From Podarcis melisellensis (taxonomy: Eukaryota), in assembly GCA_964234715.1 (NCBI GenBank), contig OZ174275.1: DNA of 64,000 bases; one strand, written 5' to 3'. Below, in pieces: positions 3,993 to 30,326 of this stretch; within the stretch, counting starts at the first letter, position 1; each line of letters opens with the position of its first letter. The notes beneath the pieces were generated by a model, which was not told the origin of the DNA, made no database searches, and saw nothing but the letters and a program-made list of their open reading frames with translations. The translations under genes and the position numbers were made by a program.

Positions 3993-6900
3993 CTACACCA
4001 AAAAAGAAGAAAATAGGGCATTAAAAACCAGAGGAAAAAGTACATCTCTCTGAATACATTTAGTGAAGGTGATTCTCACAGAAGAGCTCTAAGTTACACA
4101 AATTCGAAATTCTGGATGTGGCATGTTTTTCCTTTACTCACCATAGCAACATCATCCAAGATGCTCTGCGGTGAACTATGAGCCATAACCTGAAAAAGAG
4201 AGGCATATCAACATTGAGAACACAGCACTTGTATGACTGAAAATTGAACCATGCAAGATTTAGAACTGTTACCCGCATAACAGTAACATTCTAGCAGGTA
4301 GCAAACACATGTATCTTAAAATAAAATCCATGAAAAGCAAGCCCGTTGCTTTCAATTTTAAATAAGGTTGTTTGCTCCAGGGGAAGCTTCTGAGAATGGA
4401 AGCAAGCGCTGTGATTTTTACTGTTTCCCCTCTTCCCTCTGTAGCTCCTTGCACCTCAAAAACCTGTTCCAGAGGATTGGGGGGGGGCTTTTGGAAGAGC
4501 ATGGGAGGTGTTCCAGGTATGTAGGAGAAATAGGAAATTTGGGAAACGGCTTCTCTTCCCAATCCATTCACAAAAGCCTCTGCTGATAAAAAACCCTTAT
4601 TGTGAGTAGAAACACAACTGGATACAACCCTAAATGATTTGAAAGGTGGACCAAAAGGCATTTTTAGTTTCAACTCCCTTGTTCGATTCATAACAGGTAT
4701 TTGATTGCATTTGTGAGTGACCGAGGTAGACCAAGAACAGGGAGAAAGGAAAGTTACCACTTGTGTCCTGCCACCTTAGTTAACTCAAAACAAAACCCTC
4801 ACACAGTTTGCAGTCATGTTGGAGCAGACTGTAGTTCCCAAAATAACTGATGCACAAGCCTGCAGGTTATGTGTGCAAGTCTAGTATCAGGCTTTTGAAC
4901 CATCAGTTTAAAAAACAACATAGTTATATATTTATGCATAGAAGGCAACACACTGTTAGTAGTTTACTTTGGGCAAATACTGTGAAATGAAAGTGCACGG
5001 ATTGGGAGGTGGAGAGAAAGTTACCACTGTACCTACCTGAAGGGTAGATTTGCTTGTCCAGTGTAGTATCACTGAGTTGGGCTTCCTTGCGCCTCCAGTG
5101 GATGAAGGGAGGAGTACCTTTTACAGGAAATAGGCTGACTCCTCTCTAGTTTTGCGTACTCACTGAGCATGAACAGTCCAGAAATGAAACTCAGACTAAT
5201 GTTAACCTATATCCTACAACTGAAAGCCGACCGTGCTAGCAGAGGTGGAAAGAGATGTTGCAGGCTATGCAAGGGTGTGGCCTCGGTGATGCTACATTGG
5301 ACAAGCAAATCGACTCTTCAGATAGGTACAATGGTGCTATTTCACTTGCCCATGTAGCATCACTGGGTTGGGATGTACAAAAGCCCAACTAAGTAGGGTG
5401 GATCCCAACAGCAACAACTTACTACTCCAGCCAATGCTGTTTCAGAGGAAGCAAAGGGTGTGAGACAGGCATGCTGTAGAAGTAGTACTGGGTGGCCAGA
5501 CATGCTGCCTGAAGTTTGAGCCAGTCAATGCTGTGCTGTGACTCAAAGGGTCTCCCATCCATCTGGACCAGTTGCCCCTCACAATGTGCTCCAATGCACT
5601 CATGTGATGCTGAGACTGCCATCCTACCTTATAAAGGGGATATTAGCTCCATTGGTGAAGGGAATGCCACACACAGCTGTGGTGTCCTCTAGGCCTGGTC
5701 TAGCCTGCTCAGGAGTGTTTGGCCTACTTCAGGCTGTGGTGGCTTGGGTGCATAGGGGCTGGGAAACAGCTCATACTTTGACTAGTGATGACAGTACAGT
5801 GGTACCTCAGGTTAAGAACTTAATTCGTTCTGGAGGTCCGTTCTAAACCTGAAACTGTTCTTAACCTGAGGTACTACTTTAGCCATTGGGGCCTCCCGCT
5901 GCCGCTGCGCGATTTCTGTTCTCATCCTGAAGCAAAGTTATTAACCTGAGGTACTATTTCTGGGTTAGCGGAGTCTGTAACCTGAAGCGTCTGTAACCAC
6001 TGTACACATTTCTAAAAATCCACCTCAGCCAATGACACCTCTGTTAGGGCTAAAAATTAAAGCCTGCAGAGAGGTAGATCTCACTGTATCACTGCTGCTA
6101 AGGAGGGCAATCCAATTATCCCTAAAAGGGGGGGGGGGGGGAGCTTCTTGTGTCTCCTTCTCAGAAGCCAGTCTGTGAAGATGAGGGAAAGGAAGTCTAA
6201 TTTTTATTTTTAGTATTTATACATAGAAAGAACAGTAGAAATAGCGGAATCACACAAGAAAATTGCTAAGCTGAAATGAAAGAGTAAAAGGAGCCAGCCT
6301 ATTTGCTGTAAAGGCTATTCCTGACTTAGTCCAGAGGTGCAAGTAAGTCCAACTGGCAAGCAAAATTATAGCACCAGCCACCTAAAATATGTATTTATGA
6401 AGAAGTTTACCTTTGAACAAACAAAGTCAACTAGCGTTGCTTCTTCTTCACCAATATATTCTATTATTTTCTTGTTGATCCATGGTCTAATTCGACGTTC
6501 CATTAATGTCTAGAATAGAAAATATTATCATTTTAAATAGTTTCCATATTTTTTTATTTGGACCATACATTGCTTTCATCCCTTGTCACTTATAAAAGGC
6601 AAAAGTAAAGATAAAAGTAAATGACCCCTGGATGGTGAGGTCCAGTCAAAGGCTGGGGTACAGTGCTCATCTCGCTTCAGGCTGAGCGAGCCAGCATTTG
6701 CCCAAAGACATCTTTTCAGGTCATGTGGAGAGCATGACTAAACTACTTCTGGCGCAACAGAACACCGTGACAGAAGCCAGAGCGCACAGAAACACTGCTT
6801 ACCTTCCTGCCACAGCGGTACCTATTTATCTAATTGCACTGGTATGCTTTTGAACCGCTAGGTTGGCAGAAGCTGGGACAGAGCAATAGGAGCTCACCTC

Positions 6901-9900
6901 ATCAATTGGATTCGAATCACCAACCTTCAGATCAGCAAGCTCAAGAGGTTCAGTGGTTTAAACCACAGCACCACTCACGTCCCTTTGTCACTTATAGCAA
7001 CAATACTGTATTAATATTGAAAGAAAATCTCTGCTAGTTCAGACTAAAGGCCTATCTAGTCCTGCAACCTGTTTCCCAGAAAGGCCAACCAGATGCCTCT
7101 GGGAAACAAACATGTAGGACATGAATGAAATAGCCCTGTTCCCACTGTTCCCCAGTGACTACTACTGATGAATTTTGCCTCCAGATCCTGGAGGCAGTAT
7201 AAAGCCGTTATGCCTAATAGCTACTGAAAGCCTTCTCTATGAATTTGTCTAATCGCATTTTAGCTGGTGTCTATGACCACATCTTGTAATGTAGTGTGTA
7301 AAGAAGTTCCTATTGTGTTTATGACTGCAAGATTTAAATGGGCTTACATCAGTAAATAAACCAAGTAAAGCTTGAATTAATTTTAACTACTGGTTTTTTT
7401 AGATTTATCTGCTTCTGGTGTTTAATTATAGCAGAATGAAATAGAAAAAATGTTTGAGGTTGCAACCCTACACACCTGGAAATAAGTCCCACTGAACTCA
7501 ATGAGACTTACTTCTAAAACAATATGCATAGGACTGCAGAGTTAAGATGGCAATTCCTTTATCAAAATTTGCTTTAAATTCCTTCGATTTCAAGGCATGT
7601 ACAGTATGTAACATGTAAAAAAAATTAAGTAGATCAGTTAAAAGACAAAATGTTTATGAACTTAACATTATTTAATTGGTAGCTAGCACTTGCCAAACTT
7701 GTAAGCCAGGATCCATAATAGGACATGGGCAGATGTATCAATACAACAGGTTTTAGTTGTCTCCCTTTGCCTGCAGCAGATCTCATCAAGGAGACAAGTT
7801 TGACTGAACAGCAACTTACTTCTTGCCTGCTATATATTCCATGCTACCACTACTAAATGATCTGATATATAAGTGAATGGCTTGAATCCAGAATTCTCTT
7901 TCACTGATTAAAGTACAGTGAGCAGAAGTGATTTCCTCTTCCCCCCAGCCTCTTGCGTCCTCCATACAGTGGTACCTCGGGTTAAGTACTTAATTCATTC
8001 TGGAGGTCCGTTCTTAATCTGAAACTGTTCTTAACCTGAAGCACCACTTTAGCTAATGGGGCCTCCTGCCGCCGCTGGAGCACAATTTCTGTTCTCATCC
8101 TGAAGCAAAGTTCTTAACCCGAGGTACTATTTCTGGACAAAAAAAATTCCTTCCAGTAGCACCTTAAAGACCAACTAAGTAGCACCTTAAAGACCAACTA
8201 TTTCTGGGTTAGCGGAGTCTGTAACCTGAAGCGTATGTAACCCAAGGTACCACTGTAATGTGTTCCATAGGTTTGGGGGAATTTCCAGAACATTGTGGGA
8301 GAGCTTTAAGATGAACAAGTGAATATTGTCTCCCCTTCCTACTGCTAGTGGAATCCTTTGCTAGACTGGAAGCCTTTCACAAGCAGAGGGGCACTTAGAA
8401 ACTTAGGATCCAAGCCAATCTTTGCATTTCGGTACTAACTAACTAACTATCTACACCAGCCACTCTGGGCGGCTTTCAACAGAACATAATTAAATTAATT
8501 TTAAATAAAATAAAATAAAATAAAATAAAATAAAATAAAATGATGTGACATGCCTATGTTTAGGGTAGTATTTTTTTCTAGTTAAAGATAAATAGCAGGC
8601 ATGTGGGCTTGGTTATGTACCGAAATAAGGATTTTCCCACAGAGCTCATATTATTCAATAAGGTGCATAAATTTTACCTATACTCAGTGTTGAACCACAA
8701 GAGCTGGCAAATTAGTGCAACACATGTCCTGTAGTTCACACTCAAGATTTTGTAAAAATTTACACTTACTGAATCCACAATAGACCAGTCAAGAGGATAA
8801 GCAAAGAGTTCTGGTTTGGCTGTGGGAATTTTCTCAATTAGACTCTTAATGTGCTTGCGCTTCTCCTCAGTATTGACGCTGCCTTTGGAGGAGCCTTTGT
8901 CTTCATCACCATAATCCAGGGGCACCAGTTTCCTTTTTCGGGGCATGTCATCACTGTCTTCATCCTCAAACTTATTGAAGACACTGTCCACAGTGAGTTT
9001 CTTTCTTTTCACGGCATTGGGTTGGTTAGGACTATTGCAGGCACCTAAAATATAAAGAAGATTCATTCTAATATATTTAAACACAATCTGGAGACTCTTC
9101 CAAATTCAGGTAAGAGCTGCACTTTTAAAAACAATGGGATATCAACAAAATAATAATAATAAAAGACTGGGGGGGGGGAATCAACCACAGAGCAAAGTGG
9201 CTAAGATTAAAGAGTTTATTCTATGCTGCTTCACTCAACTGCTCTGCTCTCAAATGGATCAATAATAATTATACAATCAAAAGGCTCAAAGAAGGGAAGC
9301 ACAGAATCTGACTTCCTATCTTTGTGCCCTACTTCCTCACATGGATAGAAACAAGAAAAAAAACTTGCCCAATTTGAGGCTAAGCCCTATTTTAGGCCTG
9401 TACTCCTCTGGCTGCTGCTGATCTGGCGAGTTTTCATGTGGGATGATAATACCACAGGGAGATTCATCCCCAGGAGTGTTGGGAGTTGCATTGCCACTTG
9501 CTGAGGAAACAGATGGGGCAGAGCTGATGGGTCGCAAGGTTGGTTTAAGGCAGGGCTTTTGCTCTGGCTCTTCCTCCTCTTCTTCGGGTTCTTCCCTCTT
9601 CTCTTCCTTTTCTTGCTTTTCCTCCTCCTCTTCCTCAGATTCTGGCTCCTGTTTGGTTTGTGGCTGTCGACGCCTTTCAGCCTCTTGTTCCATCTATGGA
9701 ACAAAATTGTGGTCTTATGCACATTCTTCACCAAATGCACTTATTAGGAGTTAAAACATGCAAAGCAAGCCTGGCTGTCCCCGTAAATGGATAATCCTAG
9801 TTAATCCGAGGCAGTTTTTTAAAAGCTCAATTTTATTTGGCTTTATAAGTAAGGAATAATCCAGATTAACAATACTATGATACTTATATAAAGAGATCTG

Positions 9901-12900
9901 AAACAAAAAACTGCTTTCCACATGAACATGGGGATAAAGCCAGGACATGTCAACCAACAGGGTCAGTCACAAATCTCTAGCTTACCAATAGTCGACTACA
10001 TGACACGGTCTACTATTATAAAAATGCTCATTCACCACACTTTGCCAAAAAAGGCATTCCTTACCCTCTGTAGCTCTGCATCTGGATCTGGGTGTCCTTC
10101 CGCAAGAAGACGTTGCCGGATTTCTTCCAGTTCTTCCTTTTCCCTTTTCCTATCTCTTTCATCTGCTTCCATTTCCTTTTCCCTATCTCGCAATCGCTTC
10201 TGCAGAGCGCTTCCCCTGTAACATGTATTCACTTTTGTTTTAAAGGTCTCGTGGCACTTGTTTCCCACAAATATTTGTCAAAAACAGCACACCATAAGCA
10301 CCCGATACAGAATATTGACTGTAAAGTTTCATGTTTCATTCCCTACATCAGAGAAATAAAATACTCTGTTTGGAGTAGGATTTAGCCATGTACTTCTTTG
10401 CACCTGGATTCTTACAAGAACATGCCAGGAAGGAATAGCAATTCTTAAAACTAGGGAAATAAAAGATCCTTTAGTTTGAAAGTGATTACGAGTCTCCTCA
10501 TTCTTCCAACACAAAGTTATCTGAATATGTTCAGTGCTTTTCATAAAAGAGGTGCATATTTGCTAGGATTTATCTAATGATCACTCTTATTGGTGCTGCA
10601 TTAAATTTACAAATTTGGGGCTGCCATCTCCATCATTGAACACACAGGTTTCCTTTGTGGCGTGGAGCACCTTTGGCCAGCTTAACCTGATTCACCCACT
10701 ACATGCCCCACATTGGGCAGAAATGTCCCTGTGTTGCAGTGGGTTCGACTAGATGACCCTCATGATCCCTTCCAACTCTACAATTCTATTATTCTAAATC
10801 ACATTGTCTGTAAACCTCTCCTACTCATCACATGTTGGAACACAAGGTTTCCTACGTATGTCTTTCTGATAGGAGTCGTGTTGACGAAACCTGAGAACAC
10901 AAACTGATTTATCTTGTGAACCGCCCTGAGACCTGCGGGTATAGAAGGGTATACAAATTTAATAAATAAATAAAAATCTCCTGCAGTTCATGCTAAGCAT
11001 ACCTATAGTATTTTGGATCATCTCTGTCATCATCATAATCTTCTAGAAATTCTTTTAGACGCTTAGCTTCTTTTGCCTGTAAGAGAGTTGAAAACATTTA
11101 ATTAATTTCAGACCGAAATTAGCTCGTCACCCTTGAAGGAGTAGAAGTTATTCCTTGCCAGAAAGTTTCTAGAGTAGCACCTTCCTTTAAGTTGATAGTA
11201 AGTCACTACTAGTTTGCTTTTCCTGCTTCTGGAACTGTATTTCCTCCTCACAAACTACTGAACCCTCTGAAGCTGGAGTTGAGAGTGGACTTTCCAGTTC
11301 TGAACTAAAGTGTAGAGGCATGAGATAAGTTAGCCAGGCTTTGCATAAGGGACCTGAAATAATCGCTTTGAGTGCAAATCTGCCTCAAGTAGCCTGTCAG
11401 TTCTGGCTAGGATGCAAGAGAACCAAGTTAATGATCTCTAAATGCATGAGAGGAATTTGGGCATGCATTTTAGAAAGCAGTTTCCTGTGCCAATCCACTT
11501 TTGAAAACAGTCTACAATATAGCTTTTGAAAATGGATGGGTCCTGCTGTTGAAAGAAACATGTAAAAATGTCACTAGGCATGCAAACTTAGATCCAGCTT
11601 CTGCTCCCGCACAAGTAGGAGCGGAATCAGGGCTGCTTAGCTGGGGAGTGCAAAGCCCCTGTTTCCCAGGTGAGAGATCTCTGACCCCACTCCTGCTTGC
11701 ATGGGAGCAGAAGATGGATCAGCTGAGGAGGTGCTGGCTCCATCACACTTTTCCTGTGAGAGGTGTGTAGCTACGTTCCCCTCAATGGAGAAGTTTAAAG
11801 GAGCACCACCTGGCAAGGCGGAGACAGGCGGACAGCTGCATTAGAGGCAGTGCAGGAGTTCTCAAGATGCAGCTGCCGGGCTGCAGAACGGGATCATGGC
11901 TTTCTCAGCTTGGAAGGGCTTGAACTCCCCAGGTGAGCAATCCCACTCCTACTTGCATGCAAGCTGGAGTGGGAGCGGGCATCTCTCAGGTGGGAAGTGG
12001 ACCTTTTCACTTTATAAGGAACAAAGTCTGTAAAGCAGCCAAACACTTTCTTTTTGCATAATGCTTTTTTAAAAATTGTGGCAACATACAGACTCAGCTA
12101 TTTTGCATTCACATTTGTGAGCTACCACTTAAGTCACAAAAATATTACGACTACTACTACTGCCACTACAGGACACCCTTGTATACCAGCATAGAGATTC
12201 TGCCATTTGAGAATCTAATAAAGGCAGTGCAAAAAATAATGAACCCCTTACCATTTCTCTTCGCCTTTCTTCCTCCCTCTCAGCTTCCTTTTCATATTCT
12301 CTAGCTTTTTTCCGTTCTCTGATCTCCCAGTTTTTAAGACGCTGAAACAAAATAATCTGTTTACCATTTACTGAACCAGAGGGGGGGGGGGAAATCTCAT
12401 ATGTCACTTGAGAGAAGCAAAACCATCCACATTTAATTATATCACCCAGTCTTCTATTTCAATACAGAGGTTCTGTAAAATGCTCTGAAGTTTGATGGTC
12501 AATGCTACAAAATTATTAGAATACAGGTATGGGCAGGAAACATGCTCCACGATAATGGAGTTGGATCTTTAACAACTATTATCAGACCTCATTCAGAGAA
12601 CGGGGCTTTCACCCTGAAAAGAGACAACCTCCTTTCAACAAGTGTCTCCTGAGGGAGGATGGGGTACTGGAGGAGAGCGGCTTCAATGCAGGGCTCTGAT
12701 GCCAGTGGGTGGAATGGTAGAGTTAATATTCTTACCCCACCCCCGAAAACCGGGTGCTTTCCATTTGCAACAGAATCCCTTTGAATCCAATCCCCAAATC
12801 AGAAGCAACATCCTCCTATACCTCTTGATAAGCTGCTTCCTTTTCACGGAGCTTCCTTTCCAGTTTGCGCCGCTCATAGGCATCTTCTTCATCCTCTTCT

Positions 12901-15900
12901 CTATCCCTTTTCTTGTCCTTTTCTCGCTCTCTCTCCCGTTGTTCTCGTTCCCTTTCCCGCTCCCGTTCCCTCTCTCGCTCCCGTTCCCTCTCCCGTTCTC
13001 TCTCGCGCTCCCTTTCTCTGTCTCTGCTTTTCTCTCTGTGGACAAATATAATGACAAATGATTAATGCATGTAATTGTCAACATTTAATACTGCTGGTAA
13101 TAGAGGTTAGGTCTAACAAAATTAACTCTAATAGATAATTAAAACACCATACAATACGAGGTTTACAAAAGTTGCGATTTTGAGATCACCGAAATTAAGC
13201 CAAAACTGAAAACCTCTGTTAAGTTTTTCAAATTAGCCACAACGTTGCTTGTGTAGTCATTAGACAAATGACGTTTTGAATAGACACAGTACATCAGTTT
13301 GCTGTCTTACATTGAGAGGCAGACACAGACACACACACAGTCTCTCTGTACGTTGGTTGTGGCTTTATTCCGTCAGCCAAACCATACAAAAGGGCCTGAG
13401 GGTCAGGGCACCACGGCTGTCAGCAAATCATACCATTTAATTCACTGCCTCATGGCTTATTGCATGCTGGTCTTCAAAACAGGTTGCACCCATGAATTAT
13501 TTCCTTAAGAACCATTGTCAAATTTATTAACAAGTATTCATTACACAGCACAATTTACCTAGATCTGCTCCGATCTTTATTTCGGTCTGAACTTCTTTCG
13601 CGGTCTCTGTCTCGATCTCTTTCCCTGTCCCGGTCTCTGTCTTTAGTGCGGTCCCGATCTCTATCCCGTTCTCGTTCACGCTCCCGTTCCTTTTCCTTCT
13701 CTCTTTCACGCTCTCTCTCCCTCTCTCTTTCACGCTCCCTTCTTTCTCTTTCACGCTCCCGCTCCCTCTCTCTTTCGCGCCGTTCTTTTTCAATTTCTTG
13801 TCTCTCTTTCTCCTTTTTGCCTTTTTCCTCCTCCAATTTCTAGAAACCAAGAGGATTTTCAAAGTTAGCATGTAGCTAGAGTCGGAGGCCCCACCCCACC
13901 ACCAAGCACAACACCCAAGGCTGGTAGTGAGCATTTCAAAAACACCAATAATTTAACATTTAAATATTTAACAGCTTACTGTCAGCTCATAAGAAAAAAA
14001 GTTCTGCAATCGTAAGGCTAGATTTCGTGCAAAAAGCATATATCTAACATAGACTGGCAATCTCCAACCTTGGAAAGAAGGGCAATGCTCACCTCATATA
14101 TGCATATGCTGACAATTACATAGTGCATTGCCATCAATAGTTCACAGAAAACTCCCGAGCCACGAAAGATAGAAAAGAGCTTGAACACAGATGAATTTTT
14201 AGCTGGCAAAGTTAATTCTGCCCATGTAGGCAGATCATTTAGTAGGATGCTGACAGACAAGATTACCTCATACCACAGCCAAACCAAATTCATTCTATGC
14301 AAGGATGGGAAGTAAAATCAACTTCAACTGTGTATGTTACTTGAAATGTTTGGAAGGATACATCTTACCAATCACTTTATTCTCCCCAACTTTTAAAATT
14401 TTTTGCATTCACTGCTTAAAGTAATGGTTTCTAAAGAACAGGATCCTCAAGAAGGTTGGAAATCGCACATAGACAAGACTAAAAGGTTATACAGTACATT
14501 TTTACTGAATTCTATACAAAAGTGCATTTCTTAAATTCAAAAAGTCATGCCTATTACCAAAACTCCCATGAAGACAATAGAAAAATAAAATCTCATTAAA
14601 ATGATAGATAAATCCATCCTTGGAAGCAATTGGTGTGTGTTAACTTACAGATGCTGTGCTAGGACATGGACCGCCAACACTGGATTAACCTTGCCTACAA
14701 GCTATATTTCTGGGAGGAAGAGCAAGTACATGGTTCACAAGTAAACCAAAAAAAGGAAGGGAAAAAAACATAAGCCAAATATCAGCCTGATGGGTGCCAA
14801 AATATTAAGGGCATGATCCTTCCACATCCAAGTGTTGTGCCTGAAGAGATCAACGTAGGGCTTAACAGAGCCCATTTCTCACGCCTTCTCTCCTTAGCGC
14901 ACAATCAGTGCACCGAACGATTTCAGCCAATAAGAGGCTCTTGCATCACTACTCAGCCCCCTCTTGTCACTTGGTGGAAGGAGCATGATCCGTTCCTTCA
15001 CCAAGTGGCAAGAGGAGGAGGGTGTAAGAGAAGTGCACAAGCCTCTTATTTTCAGCAGTGGCCTGGTTCATTGCCTGCATGTATGCTAAGGAGAAAGTAA
15101 CAGAGCACCATTATCATTACAGGACCCGTCTGTGCATGGGTGTAGCATGAGTGAGGAAGGATTATACCCTGAATATATTGTATGCAGTTGATGCAAGGGG
15201 GGGAGAGCAAAATCGCCCCATTTGGCACCGTGTTTACCACTGCTGAAATAATTTATAAACTGGAACAATAAAGTGCGCATATATTTCTCTCTTTCAACAA
15301 AGAATTTAAGACAACTTTAAAAACAATCTTACCTGTCAGACAGTCTTCTCGTGTGCGCTCATGGACCAGAGAACCAAAACAAAGTCACAGTAATAAAACT
15401 AATAAACAAAAGGTCAATATATCTAACCACCACACTAAATGGTACCAAAAGTGAGATATAGGGAGGGTGGTGTTAGATACATTGAACTCACAAAAGAAAA
15501 GGGTGTTTGAGAATGGTAGAGAACAGCCATAATGGAGGAGGAAAAGTGAAAGTGTACAGAATGTGGCAACCTACTTTCTAAGTGAAATGCTCTCATACAA
15601 TATAATTTCATTTAGTGTATTAAGGTTATGCTAGCTATATTAACTTTCAAAAGCAGAACTTACCTCAAATTTCATATACTTTTATAGAAAAGTTTATATA
15701 CTGAAATGATCGATACTTACAGATTATTTTAGTTGTTCCAATAACAATGTCTTTGGTTAAGTTCCGGGATTCCCCCGCAAAAATTTCTTTTGTAGTAAAA
15801 GCCATGATAAAAATTTGCATTGACTTTTGGCATCTTAAGGCTTTTATTTCAAGCTTCTCTTTTCTTAAAAGCCAAATCAGCACTGCTGTTTCATATTGAA

Positions 15901-18900
15901 AATTTAAGTAATAGGCTGCTTCCAAGTGAACAAAAGGATGTTTTATAGGAAATGAGGGGTGAAAAGGATTCAGGATATGCTAATAAAGTAATGAGCAAAG
16001 ACGGTAGGTAGAAAAAAAAGGAAAATCTTACCTTCGGTTCTCTTCAGACTCATCTGTGCTGTAAATGGACACCCCCTGCAATGCTGATACCCTAACAGTC
16101 CAATTGTTTGTAAATTCTAACCAAAAAACATGCAAAGGTTCACTGTGCTCATTAGCCAGCCCCTTTTTGAACATCCCACCCAATATATGAAATGGCCATT
16201 TTGTATTAGATTTAGTTCCATCTATTAGAAAAGGTTAATTCAAAATATTCCCCCAATAGGATAGATCAAAGGCAGCAAAATGCCCGATTGCTTCTGAAAC
16301 AGTGAAGCATATTTTGATTTTGTTTTAATCACATTATTTCTTTACATTTCAGAGGTATGTTGGGGCTTGGAAATAAGACGATGTTTCACCACTGAACAGT
16401 TTCATACATCTTCTGGAACAATTATCCTCAGGTTCTCATTCCAAAGTTATATTACAATATGTTGCATTGCCAGCAATGTACACCCATTTTTGCTTTAAAG
16501 TAAGTGTGATCCTGTAACCAGAGTACTTTTTACCCGTTTCGTAAATTCACACCATTATACCAATATTAGCAAACTACAAGCACTCATTTCAGGGATAAAT
16601 ACTTCACTGAGCGTGCAGTACTCCAGCCTTGGTGGGCAGTTCATATTCCCTTAGAAGCTAACATCAAGAGACAGTGCATGCATAGCTTGAATTTCACCTC
16701 CCTTAAACCACCCTTCCCAACCCAACCGGAACACATTCACAAATTCACATTACAGAAACCTCTGTAGGTGGGAACCCTGAGGTAGGATTTGCTGTGTAAA
16801 CACATTTCCAAGCCAGTTACCCCTTTGCATATTTTTCTGAGGGGGCATCCATAAATAATAAAAAAAACAGAAGCTCATACTTACATCCTATTCCATGTTA
16901 CTTTCCAAGCTGTGTTTTTCATCTTGCATTAGTCACCATATGATCTCTATCATAATGGTGGGGGTCAATGAATAGATTAGCTTAATGGGAATTTACAGTT
17001 CTTCCATGCATCTAAATTTTGGTAAAGTCTGATAACCACTAACCTAATTTAATTTCACCCCCATTCTCAACTCAGAGCTATTAAATTAAATCTCAAGTTT
17101 AAATTAAGCAGCAGAGCTCAGTAAAACAGAGATTGAATTATGTCTTACAACTGCTTGAATGATGTGGGGGCCAGAATGTTTTACGCAGCAGCCCAGTCTA
17201 ATTATTGGGTCTTATGTAAATGGTTTTAGCTGCTTTGGGTTAATTTAAAGAAAAGTGGGGTAGATGTGTTTGATTTTTTTAATGTATTCACACTGAGGAG
17301 ACTGCAAGGTAGTCATTAGAAAATAAAAAGGACAAAATAAGATGATTTAAGTGGGATTTTGTCCTTAGTGGCTTTTTAGACACACATTATGCCTACTATA
17401 TGTGATATGGTCATGTGCTTTTAAATTTTCTAAAGGGGGAGGGAAACTGGATTTTGCAAAAACCTAATTTTGTATAAGGTACAAAAATAAGTATACTACC
17501 TTGTGCGTATCTCTGAATTTACTGATCTCTCGGGATATCAGGTCCCTTTTATCTTCTTCCATTTCAATAGCATTTATATCCTCCTGTAAGAGAGAAAGGG
17601 GGGCAGAACAGGAGATAGAATATTAAAACCCATCTGCACAGAAACAGGAGAACCAAAAGAAAAGCTGAAGGTTAGATGTTTTGTACCAGTCTTGTAAGAG
17701 ATAAATAAAGGCCTTCTGCAGTACCAAACCTCACAGTCTGATGTTAAATGAATGGAAAAAAAAATTAGATGGACACGAGTCACAAATCTGGTAACTAGCA
17801 GTAAACATAGTCATTGTCAAAGCCTACAATGTAAACGAACCTTGGTGATGAGTGGATAGGGTATCAGTGGGGCCACTGGAAATCTGCGGAAAATCTGCGG
17901 AAAAATCCACGGAGATTTCTTTTTTAAAAAATAGATTGCACGCTACTCTGGAAAAAAAACAATGTTCTGTATGTTTGCAGAATAAGCAATATTGCATTGC
18001 TGTGACCGTAGGTCTGACTCAACAAAGTTACAGAAGAACCTCGCTAATTCTCCGTTTACTGATCTACTTCTCGGCAAAGGTTTGCTGGGTGCCACCTCAC
18101 CCTGGCATGTCTCCATTTAAAATTGCAGAACATTAGCATTCTAGGAAATCTTGCAAGCTAAGCTACGCTTGTTCAAAGTGGCCTTTTGTGGTACTATTAT
18201 AAGCCTCGTTTTGTTTCTTACTCGCTAATTCGCAAAATTGTAATTATATCAAAGGGGGGGTTGCCAACAGTTACTGCAAATTAGCGAGGTTCCCCACATC
18301 TGAAATCAAGAGTCAGATTTCACTTGCCATTTCCTTTCCCCGCACTCTCAATTTCCCCACATTATCCCTCATCTTTTCAACAAACAGAATGGGCAAGGGA
18401 ACCAGTCACAATTATAAGCATTCAATAAAGGGGATAACAGTGCCTCAAAACCAGCTTGACATGGCGCCCACCACAGTTTTATATACTTCCCTCCCCCCAC
18501 CATGCACAGAGCTTTTTTAGTCCCACACTTCCCAACAGATAAGGGGAGGAGAAGTCATGCTCGTGTCCCATGTTCATCCTTACAAAATAAAGATGCACTT
18601 CCACTATTTCAAGGGGCAGGAAGACAAGGACACAGTTAAATATTTCATTGTTCTGATAGACCACCCTAAATTTAAAACCCAGCTACATCAGCAAGGTGTG
18701 GCTACAGGTCACCCTAAAACTAGCAGTTATTAAAGGAGGAAGATCCATATTCAGTTCTTTTAATATGGGCTTCTAAAAAGTAACCTCTCAGTGCCATTAT
18801 GTCTCTCGATACCATTATATTCTTGATTATATACATAGCATGGATAATAACTTTTAAAGAGAGAGACATGGCTTGCCTATAAATAAGTGCAGAATGCAAA

Positions 18901-21900
18901 AAAATCAGTGCAAGAATAAGTTACGTGGAGGCTAAAGAACAGTGGGAGGTGCACTCACTCCCTGAGTGAGAAGCATTATTTCTTGCACTGCCTTTTCATA
19001 CACTTCACCAGCAGCCAAGGCTATCTTATTGCTTGCACAACATAAGGGAGAAAGTTAAGCTTAGTAAGCAAGGCTGCAGAAACCAAAATTCACCCCCATC
19101 TTTTGCTGTGAGTGGCAGGTATTAAGAGCCCATCATTGAAACAATCATGACGCATTTTCAAGGCTGGCATAATGACTACTAAGCTGTACCCTCCCCCCCC
19201 CCCCAGAGGAAAGCAAAAATTAGTGTAATCATCAGCAGGGTTATCCACAGAAGGGGAATTATAGCATTTTGGGTCAAATGTTACACTTAAAAAGTATGGA
19301 TGTCAGGTGGCCCAACAGCCAAATATTAACAAACCATTTTGTAACATCATGGCTTTCATCCCTCAAGGATAAGAAAGAGCTTCTTAGCTATGTGCACAAA
19401 CATAATTAAATCAGGACAGTGAAGAAGGGCTGCCAATCAGCTGAGTTGTGGCTATAACACCAGTGCAAACCTCTATGACCCAGTGACTTAGGGCATTTAA
19501 GATGTCAAACATTACAGGCAGAATCTCTTTTAGGGTCTTAAAATCTTCTCCCCATCTCAAAAAAACATTTTGCAATTATTTCAATACATGTATTTTAGAA
19601 GGGATGAAAGGCTGAATCAAACCTGCTGAGATTCAAACCTGTAGCTCCAAGAAGTCTAGCCATTTGTGACCTTTGTGTTCACAGACCTACAACATCCACA
19701 GGGTTTGGCATCTAGAACTGATTTAATTTCAGTATGAAACATGAAAACTTCTGCTAACATCAAGGTTTTGTTGATTTGTGTTCTCATCAGATGCTTTGAG
19801 CTAATGTATTGGCACAGGGTTTGGCCCTTATGTAGGGAGATGAAGTAAATCTGTTTGTGTCCAAAATCAAAACACATACATCCTCCTTCTTTTCTTTTTT
19901 CTTCTTCCTGGGATGAGAGTCAGACTCTTGGGAGGGGGCATTGAGCTCGCTGGAATATTCCCGTATTAACACTTCAATGGCCCCTTTAATTAGCTGGTCT
20001 CTTCTCTTTGCTTCTTCATCCAGGGCTTCATCATCATCAGTTGTAGTTTCTGGCCTGGTGTTCTAAAGAGTAACACAAATCTTGAAGTCAAGCACATGGG
20101 ACATAGCAGAACAGCATCCAAAATGTTTACTTCATATGAACTAGATAGGTCTATTATTACATGTAGCTAGCAAGTGGAAGTGCTAGGTGTACTTAACATC
20201 CTTACAATCAGCCTTTAACTACAGATTCTAGTAGGTCCTCACTATCGCTGGGCGATATGTGGTTTTCAACATTGTGCTATATGTAGAGGCATTGGCTGGC
20301 TTCAGTTTTCCCACATTGGGATTTCTGCATAACTAACACCTCTCCCCCCCCCCCCATGATTCTCAATATACAGTGGTGCCTCGCAAGACGAAATTAATCC
20401 GTTCCGTGAGGCTCTTCGTATAGCGGTTTTTTCGTCTTGCGAAGCAAGCCCATTGACAGCTTAGCGGATTAGCGCTACAGCTGTCAAGCGGCTTCCAGCG
20501 ATCAGCTGTTAAGCGGCTTATCAGCGGAACAGCTGATAAGCGGCTTAGCGGCTTAAGAAAAGGGTGAAAAAAGCGGAAAAAACCCGCGGGGGGATGCAAG
20601 ATTTTTTTCGTCTTGCGAAGCAACCCCATAGGGGAATTCGTTTTGCGAAGCGCCTCCAAAACAGAAAACCCTTTCGTCTAGCGGGTTTTTCGTCTTGCGA
20701 GGCGTTCGTCTTGCGGGGCACCACTGTATTGCTAGGTCAAAAATTATGAAACCGATATAATGATATGGACTTCAAGCAGTTTTGGATGATATATCAATAC
20801 ATTGCCCAGCCTTAGTCCTCACAAGAGTGATACACAGAATTTTTCAATTGGCAAACCCAGAAAGTTCACATATATCCCCATCATTTTCTCAAGACAAAAG
20901 GCCTTCCTAGCACTCTACTACTTATTCTCATTGTTGGAAGACAAAGCTAAATTAATGCCTAAAGCACTGCTTGTGTTGCTAGAGTTGAAAATGTTTTGTT
21001 TTGTACAGAACCAACCAGCTGACAAAGTTGCAGAGTGGTCACACACACACACACACACAGCATTGCGTTCAGAAAAGACCAGCTGAAAAGTGCTTGGCAC
21101 TTGCTGCAGGAAGGTCCTCTGTGCATTTCTGGGAAGTGGTACCCAATAACTCCTGGGTGAAGAGAGCAGCATGCAGTTTTGGGTGCTGCACAAAGGTGCC
21201 TAAGATGCATTTAGGTAGCAAGAGCCAACACTTCCCGTGCCTGCCAATCCTTTATAGCTAAGTCTCTTTTGGTTCCTCTGCCATACCGCCTTCCTCCCAA
21301 TTTTGAAGCTGGGGCGGTGGCAGGAACCACCACTCTACTGCTCAGAGAATAATGCTTGCCGCTCATCACACATGACAAGAGGGCAAATGAATTTGCTGAC
21401 GCCTGGCACAAACTTTAAAGAGAATGATACACTACAATGTGGGCGCTCTCTGAACAAATAAAAATAATTTAGTGTGGATTCATGTGATATTTTTATGCAG
21501 CAAGTACAACATAATACAGTGCAGGTTTCAAATTAATACGCTATGTCAGCAGTTATAGAAATATTCTGTTCCGTAGGATTAATAATGCTGTTCAACAAAG
21601 TGGAGAACACATACAAGGCAACACCGTACCAACCTACCCTTTGGGTCACACATTACCAAACTTATACACAAAGTTTGTCTGCAGTATAAACAGACTTTTG
21701 CATGTAAGTGGTCATACTGCACAATGACAATACATGTGTGTAAAATGCTTTAACATACGTATCTGTAGACTGTCACTTCCACACTAGAATTGCTGAATTT
21801 CAATTTTCCATGTAAGATGAATGTAACATAGACTTTAAACTATTAATAAAAACATTAATATATACACAGTTGCCTACAAAACTTTAATGATTATATATTT

Positions 21901-24900
21901 AAAGGCTTATAGCTTGCCTCTCGGAAGGCTCAAAGGGGCTCACAACAATTCTAAATCTAAAAATAAATAAATCACAGAATCAAATACAGTAAGAAATGAA
22001 AATCCCCACTTTCCTCCTTACAAATAGTAAATAGATAAATTCTCATCTGCACATGGAAGTATGAATGACCTGAGGCCAAGTGACTTCAACTTGCTCCAGG
22101 CCATTCTCAGCCTACAGCCTGGCTGCAAGGAAAACCTAAATACAGAAAAAGAATGTGCATATTACATTTATTTTTTTATCTTCCATCCCATCAAACATTT
22201 GTCACTGCTGTCGCTACTGAGGAGCAGTGGGGGGAAAAACAGGCAATGTCCTATCATGTCCCCCCCCTTTTTTCATACACTTGTATTAAACTTAAATAAT
22301 AAATTCTTGCCTTAAAAAGAGGGGATGGGAATCTCACCTGAGAATAAGAGATGGATGTCCAGTCAAATGCCAAGTGGATAAAGAGTGAATAGGAAAGAGA
22401 CAGGCTTATGGAGAAGCAGTAGCTAAGAAGTAGGGGCAGGAGGGGATTTCAGCTGGTGCAGAAGCTGCAATGTCAAGGAGGAACAGCCTGAAATGACCTA
22501 ATAGGTAGTGCCGCTTAGGTGGTAGTAAAAGAAATTAAGGGGGTAACAGTATTAGTCAGGGATGGAAGTTAAGTAGAGCCAGATATCTGCCTTATTTAGT
22601 TTCTCCATATTTTAAGAAAGCAGGAATTTATGGAGAGCTTTCTTGTCTGCTCATGTGAAATAAATGCAGTGGTACCTCGTGTTACGTACTTAATCTGTTC
22701 CGGAGGTCCGTTCGTAACATGAGGCGCACTTTTGCTAATGGCGCCTCCTGTGCCCCTGGAGCGCGACTTCCGCTCGCATCCTGGGACAAGGGGCATCTAC
22801 TTCTGGGTTAGCGGAGCGTGTAACCCACAGCATTCATAAGGGGCACGGTACGTAACACGAGGTAGCACTGTACTAAAATACTCCTACTTTATAGGCTGTG
22901 TATCAAAAGGGTAAACCCTAAACCCCTTTCTATGGCACATGGGTAACTAAATTTAACTCATTAAAAGCTTTTAACTACTTTATCACACAAACATAGCAAA
23001 AAGTTAACAATGCATTAAAACACTTTTTAAGATGTTTCAGTGAGCGGGTTGGCTGTGTTTTGCTTCTGGTCTTTATTTCTCCCTTCCTTGCCCCAAGGAC
23101 AAATTATAGTGAATGGTGAGGCATGTACTCCTAACCAGGAGCTTGCAGAAGCTGCTAGAGTACAGCAACACTGTAAGCTATGCAAGATTGCTTAAGTTAC
23201 TACAAGTAAGAAAATGCACTATATTTCACATCGTCTTTGGCTGAGCCTTGGCCATAGACTTAAATCAAGATAAAAAATTCTAAATATTTTGTGTTTTTCT
23301 CTAACATTATCATTCCAGAAAAGCTGTATTATTAGGTAAGGTAAAGGTAAATGACCCCATAACGGTTAAGACCAGTCAAAGACAAGTACAGGGTGCGGCG
23401 CTCATCTTGCTTCAGGCCAAGGGAGCCAGCATTTGTCCACAGACAGCTTTCTGGGTCATGTGGCCAGCATGGCTAAACCGCATCTGGCACAACAGAACAC
23501 CGTGACGGAAACCAGAGCGCATGGAAACGCTGTTTACCTTCCTGCCACCACAGTACTTATCTACTTGCACTAGCATCTACTTTCTTGCATGGATTCAAAC
23601 TGCCAACCTTCCGATCAGAAAGCCCAAGAGGCTCAGTGGTTTAGACCCTTTAACACTGTATTATTAGCAGACAGCTTATTATTAGATACATTTTTTAAAG
23701 TGATTTGTGAATTCACGTGTTGATAGGCAAGTCTGTAAAAAAAATGAAGGACTTGCAACTTGTGAACTTATTTGAAATTTTTGATAATAGTGCACCTGTG
23801 TGAAATGACTCACTTTCTAGATTGATTTCCTTATGTTTTGCATCTTAGCCAGGGGCTGACTGTTCTTGGGACTATTATATGCCTTACTTCTTCCAATCTT
23901 ACTACTTTCTCTTCTAAATACAGTGGCACCTCGGGTTACATACGCTTCAGGTTACATACGCTTCAGGTTACACACTCCGCTAACCCAGAAATAGTGCTTC
24001 AGGTTAAGAACTTTGCTTCAGGATAAGTACAGAAATTGGGCTCCGGCGGCGCGGCAGCAGTGGGAGGCCCCATTAGCTAAAGTGGTGCTTCAGGTTAAGA
24101 ACAGTTTCAGGTTAAGTACGGACCTCTGGAACGAATTAAGTACTTAACCCGAGGTACCACTGTACTTAATTGTGAGGATGTTTACAAATGTGATTTGACA
24201 TGCAGTTTGTGGCTAGGTTCACCTGCTTGTGCTTGTTATGAAGCTATCACTTAAATGGTTAGGTTGAACTATGGTGGCCTGAGAAGGTATATGGGCACAG
24301 TGCTTGTTGGCAGAAGACATGCAAGCACATGTACAACTTTGCATGTTAAGCAAAGCTTTTCATGCTGGTCATACCCAGCGGGAATCAGATTTTTTTTACT
24401 TTGGAGTTGGCAGACTCTACTCTGGATCAGCAAGTCTAGCAGAGAGCAGGACATCTGGTTTCCTCCTGGAAATGGTTGGGTTTGATCTGAGAGACTGCAG
24501 CTGCTTATCCCTTAACCTTCTTCTGTCAGTTTTATAATCCAGTTCCTCAAGCAGAAAGTGCAGTTTGTTGGGGATTTGAAGTTTACACTCAAATTCTGAT
24601 CATGAAAATTAAACAAAAGAACAGTGCAACGGTCATCTGCAGAAAAGGTGTAATAAAGTCAGCATAGCAGGTTAAATTGCAACAGAAAATAAGCAAATCA
24701 GGTAAAAGAACTAAGAGCACTTAATGCCAATCCAATTTATTTGTAATTCAATTGTTTCCTGTCCCAGTTTAGCATAGTTACACACAACATACCCCATTGG
24801 AAGCCCTTTTCTTCGCTTTCCATTCATCTAGCTGAGCCTTCGTCTTGGCATCAACTTTCACAAGTAGTTTCTTTTCTCCAATTTGGAGATCGTGTAGTAG

Positions 24901-29012: not shown

Positions 29013-29964
29013 TTTTAGCAGTAACCTAGAAAAAGAATGAACCTATTAGCTTCAAATCAGTGCTTGTTTACAGATGTTTCTACTCTCCCCCTAAATGAGC
29101 AAGATGCTTAAAACCAGGTAGAAAACAGGAGCTCTAGCCTAACTCTAGCTGCCTAAGAACATCTTGCTCCAAGTTATCAGATATGAGATAGCTAACTGTG
29201 AAACACCTACAGAGAAAGCCCATTGAGCATGGTTCTCACCTCAGGTTGTTGCTACACAAACTACCCCCCTATGTAGGTAGGGCTAGCAAGTTTTGTGGAG
29301 ATAAAAGGCTCCGTTGGGAACACAGCTGATCCTAATAGCCACAAAGGCCTGGTCTGGATAAGAATTGCAGCTGAGCTGAATATTTCTTCCTTGCTGCTCC
29401 CTTCATTGCACACCAGCTTTGATGTGATGACCCTGGCTTGTATTAAGCCAGAATTCCCCATTATATCCAAACTGAGGAACTCCAACTTAATGCTGGATGA
29501 CTAATCCTCAAGCCCTCCCAAAGTCCTAGTCAAAGAGAAGGGTCTTCACCAATCTACAAAAAGTCAGCAATGTCAGTGATCAGATGCATCTCCAATGAGA
29601 AAACAGTTCTCCCATGGGGAAAGCATCAGTTAGGACCATTATGTGAACCGTATGACACAAATTTTTAAGCAGGCTCACTAAATTCCCATGTGCTTCCAAG
29701 TACAATTCTGGTACTGGTGTTTTATATGAAGTGTTAATATGGCTTTGATTCAGGAGGATTGCTCCTGCTGGATCAAAAGCCCTTGTGCTTGGACAATGGC
29801 ATCAACTGGATATAACCTACTATGTTTTTGAGGTTGCTTTTAGAGCTGGAATTTTTGCTTGGATTGTTTTTGTCTGCTGCTGCCCTGTGTTTAGATTTGA
29901 TGTTGTATCATCTTGCTATTTACTGCTTGCTTGTGCTATTTTATTATTACTACAATAAATAAAA

Positions 29965-30326
29965 GGGACGCGGGTGGCGCAGTGGGTAAAACCTCAGCGC
30001 CTAGGGCTTGCCGATCGCATGGTCGGCAGTTCGAATCCCCGCGGCAGGGTGAGCTCCCGTCTTTCAGTCCCAGCTCCTGCCCACCTAGCTGTTCGAAAGC
30101 ACCCCTAAGTGCAAGTAGATAAATAGGTACCGCTTTATAGCGGGAAGGTAAACGGCGTTTCCGTGTGCTGCGCTGGTGCCGGCTTGCCAGAGCAGCTTCG
30201 TCACGCTGGCCACGTGACCCGGAAGTGTCTGCGGACAGCGCTGGCCCCCGGCCTCTTAAGTGAGATGGGCACACAACCCTAGAGTCGGACACGACTAGCC
30301 CGTACGGGCAGGGGTACCTTTACCTT
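29965..30326 (+). mobile_element. Sauria-type SINE, CpG-rich (young)
   Basis: Close to the copy at 215; 14-bp TSD TACAATAAATAAAA (29951-29964 / 30327-30340). Confidence 0.9.

Follow-up and report, generated by a model that had tools for sequence, protein, structure and literature searches.

Intron 9 of a lizard RBM25 gene carries bird-conserved candidate cryptic exons and is probably an unproductive-splicing module

How is the level of RBM25 set? This protein, which acts with U1 as a global activator of splicing, is a partner of LUC7L3 and supplies the activator domain of the dCasRx-RBM25 splicing tools; the literature searched gave no account of what sets its level. The question is raised by intron 9 of the RBM25 gene in a 64,000-nucleotide stretch of DNA from the lizard Podarcis melisellensis (assembly GCA_964234715.1, contig OZ174275.1), referred to below as the window. 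A first-pass annotation had noted in this intron an array of motifs resembling strong 5′ splice sites (donors) and had read it as an autoregulatory detained intron. Comparison with orthologous bird DNA points to a group of cryptic elements that resemble exons and that each end in a 5′ splice site of the GTAAG type; the group is very probably ancient and common to lizards and birds. Intron 9 is probably a conserved unproductive-splicing module, consisting of one or more poison exons, foremost a candidate here called PE1, and/or of decoy exons that stall the excision of the intron. That RBM25 itself acts on this module is possible, and is put forward more tentatively.

RBM25 occupies the minus strand of the window. 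Its PWI exon matches Protein Data Bank entry 3v53, "RNA-binding protein 25" (E 2e-16), as well as the Pfam PWI family; exact look-ups of five open reading frames (ORFs) of the window gave no match. The exons were mapped by eye, with 14 donors mapped in total. The features that frame the intron are listed below, with a slash at the exon-intron boundary.

Exon 8, ending at 17841, minus strand: 45 nt, frame-preserving, donor AAG/GTTCGT.
Exon 9, 17583..17500, minus strand: 84 nt, phase 0, frame-preserving, donor AAG/GTAGTA.
Intron 9, 17499..13840, minus strand: 3660 nt, AT-rich, acceptor ttggtttctAG.
Exon 10, 13839..13559, minus strand: 281 nt, ER/RD-rich, acceptor with a moderate pyrimidine tract.
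Exon 11, 13035..12822, minus strand.
Exon 12, 12341..12252, minus strand.

Intron 9 is bounded by weak sites. The exon 9 donor is the weakest of the 14 that were mapped, with a score of -0.27 on an approximate 9-mer position weight matrix (PWM), and the pyrimidine fraction of the exon 10 acceptor is 0.65 as against 0.94 for that of exon 9. Read-through from exon 9 into the lizard intron meets a stop after 11 codons. Weaker 5′ and 3′ splice sites together with conservation above that of other introns are the statistical traits of detained introns (PMC4281565), and intron 9 fits them.

The orthologous DNA was reached through an alternative-frame ORF over exon 10, for which a word search returned two ORF calls on contigs carrying pieces of RBM25; the ER-rich ORF of exon 10 itself, being of low complexity, had given no scoring match. 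The RBM25 contigs come from two species with 92% identity between them, one represented by the metagenome contigs L001 and L007 and the other by L002-L006. L007 was found by scanning JGI metagenome contigs with a 24-nt string common to lizard and bird; it is 8.9 kb long and 99.97% identical to L001, and it reaches upstream through exon 7, so that bird exons 7-12 and the whole of intron 9 (3602 nt) are available on it. We take L001-L007 to be avian, given a bird-type repeat at the contig ends and the likeness of the two species; with that repeat recognised as avian, the contigs were not taken for human. The comparison covers one lizard and two birds. Conserved blocks comprise the lizard positions for which a 50-nt window reaches at least 75% identity with the bird. 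The stretch 14639-14750 and its bird homologues were masked in the alignments, and Rfam was scanned on either side.

Conservation as a check on function had been proposed in the first-pass annotation, and here the intron answers clearly. It is strongly and selectively conserved between lizard and bird, as the share of each intron in conserved blocks shows.

Intron 9: 35% (1237 nt, the masked stretch uncounted).
Intron 8: 91%.
Intron 7: 23%, mostly adjoining exons 7 and 8.
Intron 10: 0%.
Intron 11: 0%.

For introns 10 and 11, even a permissive BLAST of lizard against bird gave no match beyond the exon edges. Identity between lizard and bird is 81-84% in coding exons 10-12, with 84% for exon 10. 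The contigs of the second bird span roughly the last 1.2 kb of the intron; there the two birds differ at 2.4% of the columns inside the blocks and at 12.6% outside them (P 6e-10), so that constraint persists among birds.

The donor-like hexamers that had been reported in intron 9 are all present on its sense (minus) strand. In the following list a single number is the lowest coordinate of the hexamer; in the text below a site is named by the position of its first G.

GTAAGT at 16879, 15715, 15658 and 14643, minus strand, intron 9.
GTAAGA at 17143, 16026, 15327 and 14363, minus strand, intron 9.
GAG/GTGAGC at 14087..14092, minus strand: strong by PWM; GCGAGG in the bird, not kept.
GAG/GTAATC at 14261..14266, minus strand: not kept in the bird.
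GTT/GTAAGA at 17143..17148, minus strand: GTAACA in the bird, not kept.
TTG/GTAAGA at 14363..14368, minus strand: not kept in the bird.

With the masked stretch set aside, seven GTAAG[AT] sites can be compared; the bird has exact counterparts of five (16884, 16031, 15720, 15663 and 15332) and lacks the other two (17148 and 14368). The eighth site, TCT/GTAAGT with its G at 14648, lies inside the masked stretch; it looks kept by eye and stands outside the quantitative analysis. Among all 6-mers of the intron 15% are kept (binomial P 1.4e-3), and among other GT-hexamers 14%. The correspondence also holds from the other side, as five of the six unmasked GTAAG[AT] in the bird intron are the kept sites of the lizard. 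On the antisense strand of intron 9, neither of the two GTAAG[AT] sites is kept in the bird.

The number of sites is a weaker argument than their conservation. Eight sense GTAAG[AT] occur in intron 9, against 1.56 ± 1.22 in dinucleotide-preserving shuffles (P about 0.0005) and a mean of 2.1 in 3.66-kb sliding windows on both strands, among which intron 9 is the maximum; its own antisense strand has two. By this measure the donor density does exceed background, as the first-pass annotation had supposed. When the exon side is scored as well, four sites reach a PWM score of at least 6, against a mean of 1.1, and this number is equalled by 3-6% of windows; at a PWM score of at least 3, the donor count is unremarkable. 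Because there are about 35 independent windows and the motif was picked post hoc, the donor count by itself is only borderline and suggestive.

The five kept sites lie within blocks of high identity, and several of these have the makings of an exon. The blocks and their candidate exons are as follows.

Block A, 16726..17110, minus strand: 385 nt, 88% identical between lizard and bird, above coding exons 10-12.
Candidate poison exon PE1, 16885..17011, minus strand: 127 nt, acceptor ...aaaatttAG/ATGCAT, donor GAT/GTAAGT; in the bird L007:5334-5460:-.
Blocks B, 16347-16248 and 16194-16011, minus strand: a kept acceptor-like TGTTTCAG (exon start about 16293) and a kept donor AAG/GTAAGA (G at 16031).
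Block C, 15625..15768, minus strand: kept donors YCT/GTAAGT (G at 15720) and GAG/GTAAGT (G at 15663), 57 nt apart.
Block D, 15277..15403, minus strand: donor CAG/GTAAGA (G at 15332), followed by 33 identical nt of 34.
Conserved block 15216..15273, minus strand: acceptor-like ATTTCAG/ and GTG/GTAAAC.
Conserved blocks 14804-14775 and 14638-14564, minus strand: flanking the masked 14639-14750 and including a run of 33 identical nt of 33.
Conserved block near the 3′ end, 13981..14086, minus strand: holding the 3′ arm (14071-14057) of a candidate long-range helix.

PE1 is the clearest of the candidate exons. It is of equal length in lizard and bird, with 124 of its 127 nt identical; it contains stops in all three frames in both, and its length is not a multiple of 3. 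The conservation around it runs ~100 nt upstream and ~160 nt downstream. Since at least eight exons follow and the 127 nt would shift the frame, inclusion of PE1 is predicted to place a premature stop upstream of later exon junctions.

Similar pairs of motifs occur in the other blocks. In block B the identity collapses immediately after the donor at 16031, and the lizard has an alternative acceptor at 16116. A kept TTCAG/ between the two donors of block C delimits a candidate mini-exon of 37 nt (15700..15664), and 35 of 36 nt around 15663 are identical. Block D contains a candidate exon of 66 nt (15398..15333), equal in length in the bird and with an in-frame TGA in the lizard. An AG and a GTAAG motif are thus kept as a pair in the bird at four predicted cassettes: PE1, about 16293..16032, 15700..15664 and 15398..15333. 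Several of the supposed decoys more likely mark where an entire cryptic exon ends than serve as U1 sites in isolation.

Four sense G-runs inside the blocks are kept as well (17058-17062, 16820-16823, 16072-16076 and 15216-15219), two of which flank PE1. Runs of this kind bind hnRNP H/F. RBM25 binds G-rich RNA according to crosslinking (eCLIP) and in vitro binding (RBNS) data (bioRxiv 10.64898/2026.10.05.756609). The RBM25 motif CGGGCA is present in one copy, at 16286, that is not kept in the bird, and it was set aside. In the 3′ part of the intron, the sense sequence GCGAUUUCCAACCUU (14452-14466) can pair at 15 of 15 positions, two of them G-U, with AAGGUUGGAGAUUGC (14057-14071) ~380 nt downstream. 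Both arms of this candidate helix lie in bird-conserved blocks, and the 5′ arm in the bird has one change, which breaks the terminal wobble pair. A known structured RNA gene (snoRNA or miRNA) was also considered for the blocks and rejected; there is no Rfam match at the gathering score, and no family explains the blocks.

RBM25 is a splicing-factor gene, its intron 9 holds conserved, stop-filled elements bounded by splice-site motifs, and the sites that flank the intron are weak; we therefore favor an unproductive-splicing module. In such a module U1 and the splicing machinery would engage a cryptic element instead of joining the weak exon 9 donor straight to exon 10. The engaged element might then be spliced in, or the excision of intron 9 might stall and the transcript be held back. 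Inclusion of PE1 would add 127 nt with stops in every frame, and the resulting premature stop, ahead of the ER/RD and PWI exons, would lead to nonsense-mediated decay (NMD). By either route less full-length RBM25 would be made, and the level of this U1-associated factor would be under homeostatic control of the kind known from many other splicing-factor genes. In this scheme we infer the use of the elements in RNA, the decay or detention, and the deciding factor, which could be RBM25 itself, the LUC7 paralogues, TIA1 or proteins that bind G-runs. The earlier reading as an autoregulatory detained intron gains from the donor density and from the selective conservation between lizard and bird. 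It has to be revised in that several of the decoys are better seen as parts of cryptic exons and in that donor class alone is not diagnostic.

Several observations weigh against an unproductive-splicing module. The pyrimidine tract at the acceptor of PE1 is poor, and in the bird no in-frame stop occurs in the 66-nt candidate exon of block D. The boundaries of all candidate exons are themselves predictions, and pseudo-exons can be predicted in any intron. When the GTAAG sites are compared with composition-matched hexamers, of which 32% are kept, their excess conservation reaches just P 0.04 by Fisher's test. The range of species, one lizard and two birds, is limited. Retained introns are often short and GC-rich, whereas intron 9 is AT-rich and 3.7 kb long. 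No RBM25 poison exon, detained intron or autoregulation was found described in the literature searched, and RBM25 is not among the U1-auxiliary genes listed in one study as having raised retention of their own introns (PMC7733475). Of the sequencing runs listed as holding the region 13500-17700, none is recorded as RNA. The share of the words of this region found in each of 14 small contig sets (two related organisms, four studies) is 0.54-0.56; a value this constant would fit DNA capture libraries aimed at an ultraconserved element of intron 9 rather than RNA, the RNA label being a guess.

Chance is the simplest of the alternatives. Intron 9 would then be an ordinary AT-rich intron in which hexamers were picked post hoc, and it is true that scoring the exon side, or lowering the threshold, leaves the density at a rank among the top 5-25% of windows, with motif and window both chosen post hoc. 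The deep and selective conservation of the intron and of most sites between lizard and bird contradicts this, and we give chance next to no credence. Hardly more attractive, and in our judgment very unlikely, is the idea that the blocks are conserved non-coding elements with no relation to splicing, such as enhancers or exons of an antisense transcript, in which GTAAG is incidental. Conservation alone names neither strand nor function, and a mirror reading on the plus strand, with CTTAC as a branch point followed by a pyrimidine tract and AG, fits several sites. Conserved elements in splicing-factor genes are, however, typically unproductive exons (PMC6097662, PMC11357089), the excess of GTAAG[AT] is on the sense strand (8 against 2) and none of the antisense sites is kept, and no conserved donor partners were seen on the plus strand. 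The blocks could instead serve as intronic regulators of exons 8 and 9 (silencers, enhancers, RNA bridges or U1 landing sites) that are never spliced in, exons 8 and 9 being the alternative exons. Both exons preserve the frame, the region 18077-17444 including intron 8 is 83-98% identical, with intron 8 measuring 257 nt in both species, and the candidate long-range helix with its two conserved arms and several conserved G-runs would suit such a role. Against this, block A is 390-770 nt distant from exon 9, and for other blocks the distance reaches 3.4 kb. Acceptor-like motifs are paired with donor-like ones in the blocks, and an exact-length, stop-filled PE1 is typical of poison exons. We consider this role improbable as the main explanation, although it overlaps with the decoy-exon version of the unproductive-splicing module.

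A further proposal, which came with the first-pass annotation, makes the intron a sensor of the balance among U1 auxiliary factors. LUC7L3 would favor the exon 8 and 9 donors, which are strong on the exon side (left-handed), LUC7L and LUC7L2 would favor the unproductive sites, which have a strong intron side or match the consensus in full, and the LUC7 ratio together with RBM25 would set the output. The contrast of donor classes behind this proposal is real and conserved. In the donors of exons 8 and 9 the exon side is strong and the intron side weak; AAG/GTTCGT and AAG/GTAGTA are letter-identical in the bird, within an almost invariant 630-nt stretch formed by exon 8, intron 8 and exon 9. Three GTAAGT sites (16884, 15720 and 14648) are, as had been said of them, poor on the exonic side, with exon-side scores of -1 to -3.9 and an intron-side score of +4.8. 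These three fit the intron-side-strong (right-handed) class, and their forms GAT/, YCT/ and, by eye, TCT/GTAAGT are kept in the bird. The sites at 16031, 15663 and 15332 (AAG/, GAG/ and CAG/GTAAG) are kept and are strong on both sides, and so do not belong to the right-handed class. Nor is the contrast unique to intron 9; within RBM25 itself, the donors of exons 4, 11 and 17 are also left-handed and weak on the intron side, and the ordinary exons 2, 3 and 16 use xxx/GTAAGT. With three ordinary exons having intron-side-strong donors, donor class alone cannot separate decoy from real sites in RBM25.

The published record and the sequence that surrounds the sites bear on the same proposal. According to a paper that does not mention RBM25, right-handed donors are promoted by LUC7L2 and LUC7L and left-handed ones by LUC7L3, and members of the family regulate one another by way of exons with premature termination codons (PTC exons) whose donors are right-handed (PMC11842720). 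RBM25 is the counterpart of Snu71, a U1 protein of yeast, and is classed together with LUC7 and TIA1 (PMC9808567, PMC7733475), and it promotes inclusion when tethered downstream of an exon (PMC12868881). The 20 nt downstream of the sites are T-rich, with a T fraction of 0.49 against 0.35 at composition-matched hexamers of intron 9 (P about 0.001) and about 0.28 downstream of the other 63 GTAAG[AT] sites in the window; the corresponding U-rich tracts after the decoys would suit the sensor. The 20 nt upstream are purine-rich (0.62). On the plus strand the same arrangement resembles a branch point, a pyrimidine tract and an AG, and composition alone therefore names no strand. On balance a sensor of this kind seems unlikely. 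Its evolutionary form, in which left-handed exon 8 and 9 donors have been set against the GTAAG array for roughly 280 million years, with the LUC7L3:LUC7L/LUC7L2 ratio and RBM25 bound to G-runs or U-tracts setting the output, is likewise doubtful.

Three other interpretations of the sites were tried and rejected. They do not have the character of recursive splice sites, given the purine-rich upstream sequence and an intron of merely 3.7 kb. They are not copies of a repeat unit or the product of a tandem duplication; alignments of the flanks gave z below 2.4 except for two overlapping sites, and BLAST found no match elsewhere in the window. A telescripting signature, that is, few sense poly(A) signals, was sought in the numbers of AATAAA, and the two sense copies against seven antisense ones are mostly explained by T-richness.

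The unproductive-splicing module has neighbors that are conserved in their own right. The span 17444-18077 on the minus strand, which runs from the final 190 nt of intron 7 through exon 8, intron 8 and exon 9 to the opening 56 nt of intron 9, is 83-98% identical to the bird. Intron 8 is exactly 257 nt long in both species, identity in the 100 nt that follow the exon 8 donor is about 97%, and a duplicated acceptor, TTTTCCGCAG-ATTTTCCGCAG, is kept exactly. Because both preserve the frame, exons 8 and 9 may themselves be regulated cassette exons. A further conserved intronic flank occupies 19595-19879 on the minus strand, where the first 150-280 nt of intron 7 after exon 7 are about 77% identical to the bird.

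Intron 9 had also been described as free of recognizable transposable elements. This is correct insofar as neither of the two families of short interspersed element (SINE)-like repeats of the window is present in it. It does, however, contain a segment specific to the lizard, listed here with the two families.

Lizard-only segment, 14808..15205, minus strand: ~400 nt, absent from both birds, lying between conserved blocks.
SINE-like family 1 (~385 nt): 202-585, 6608-6990, 23325-23571, 29961-30345 and 59697-60082.
SINE-like family 2 (~220 nt): 5793-5998, 7964-8136, 22658-22872, 23918-24171 and 44116-44362.

The lizard-only segment includes a near-perfect hairpin of 225 nt (14875-15105; dG -109 kcal/mol, z -7.4), for which Rfam gave sub-threshold miRNA-like matches alone. 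It is probably an inserted palindromic element resembling a miniature inverted-repeat transposable element (MITE), and is possibly located inside a bird candidate exon. The two SINE-like families populate other RBM25 introns and flanks. Elsewhere in the gene, the exon ending ...LSLKLG has an apparent GC donor, TGG/GCAAGT, at about 9366-9369 on the minus strand, i.e. a GC-AG intron.

A conserved cluster of stop-filled, exon-like elements between the RNA recognition motif (RRM) half of the protein and its ER/RD-PWI half offers a concrete control point for the level of RBM25, and the conserved contrast of donor classes makes the LUC7 donor classes testable at a natural locus. If the unproductive-splicing module holds true, RBM25 intron 9 would be a second multi-decoy intron beside intron 4 of SF3B1. 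If the sensor reading were true, RBM25 would be tied into the LUC7 cross-regulatory circuit. Should mammalian annotation of the GENCODE type already list these exons, the value of the present analysis would be reduced to showing their age and architecture.

Among known systems, SF3B1 intron 4 offers a close parallel, with six highly conserved cryptic decoy exons that promote its retention (Parra et al. 2018, PMC6097662). Like RBM25 intron 9, it is an intron of several kilobases in a splicing-factor gene, with short cryptic elements that have paired consensus sites and premature stops and that are conserved between reptiles or birds and beyond. The elements differ in length, 29-56 nt in SF3B1 and 37-262 nt for the RBM25 candidates. 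They also differ in that the use of the SF3B1 exons and the retention have been shown by junction reads after inhibition of NMD and by minigenes, whereas the RBM25 elements are predicted from DNA sequence. Among retained introns, decoy exons are characteristic of those exceeding 1 kb (PMC7373989, PMC12017769), and the OGT intron 4 decoy exon is, like the RBM25 candidates, a cryptic exon inside an intron of more than 1 kb (PMC12017769, PMC7373989). Detained introns as a class differ from other introns in having weaker splice sites at their ends and a more conserved sequence (Boutz et al. 2015, PMC4281565); they are defined by an excess of intron reads in nuclear poly(A)+ RNA, whereas RBM25 intron 9 is likened to them by traits of its DNA.

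Ultraconserved poison exons of splicing-factor genes, those for SR proteins included (TRA2B, SRSF3, SMNDC1 and RBM39, among others; PMC11791180, PMC11357089, PMC10477243), resemble PE1 in their near-perfect conservation, above that of coding exons, in having stops in all frames and in lying within the gene of a splicing regulator. For these exons autoregulatory binding and NMD have been demonstrated, whereas PE1 is a candidate, and RBM25 apparently has several such elements rather than one. Control of LUC7L and LUC7L2 is exerted by PTC exons whose donors are of the intron-side-strong class (Kenny et al. 2025, PMC11842720). RBM25 differs from them in not being a LUC7 paralogue, and three of its six kept sites, one of these three kept by eye, are clearly right-handed. 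What it has in common with LUC7L and LUC7L2 is that all are U1 auxiliary genes with intron-side-strong donors, to which a logic of balancing donor classes can be applied.

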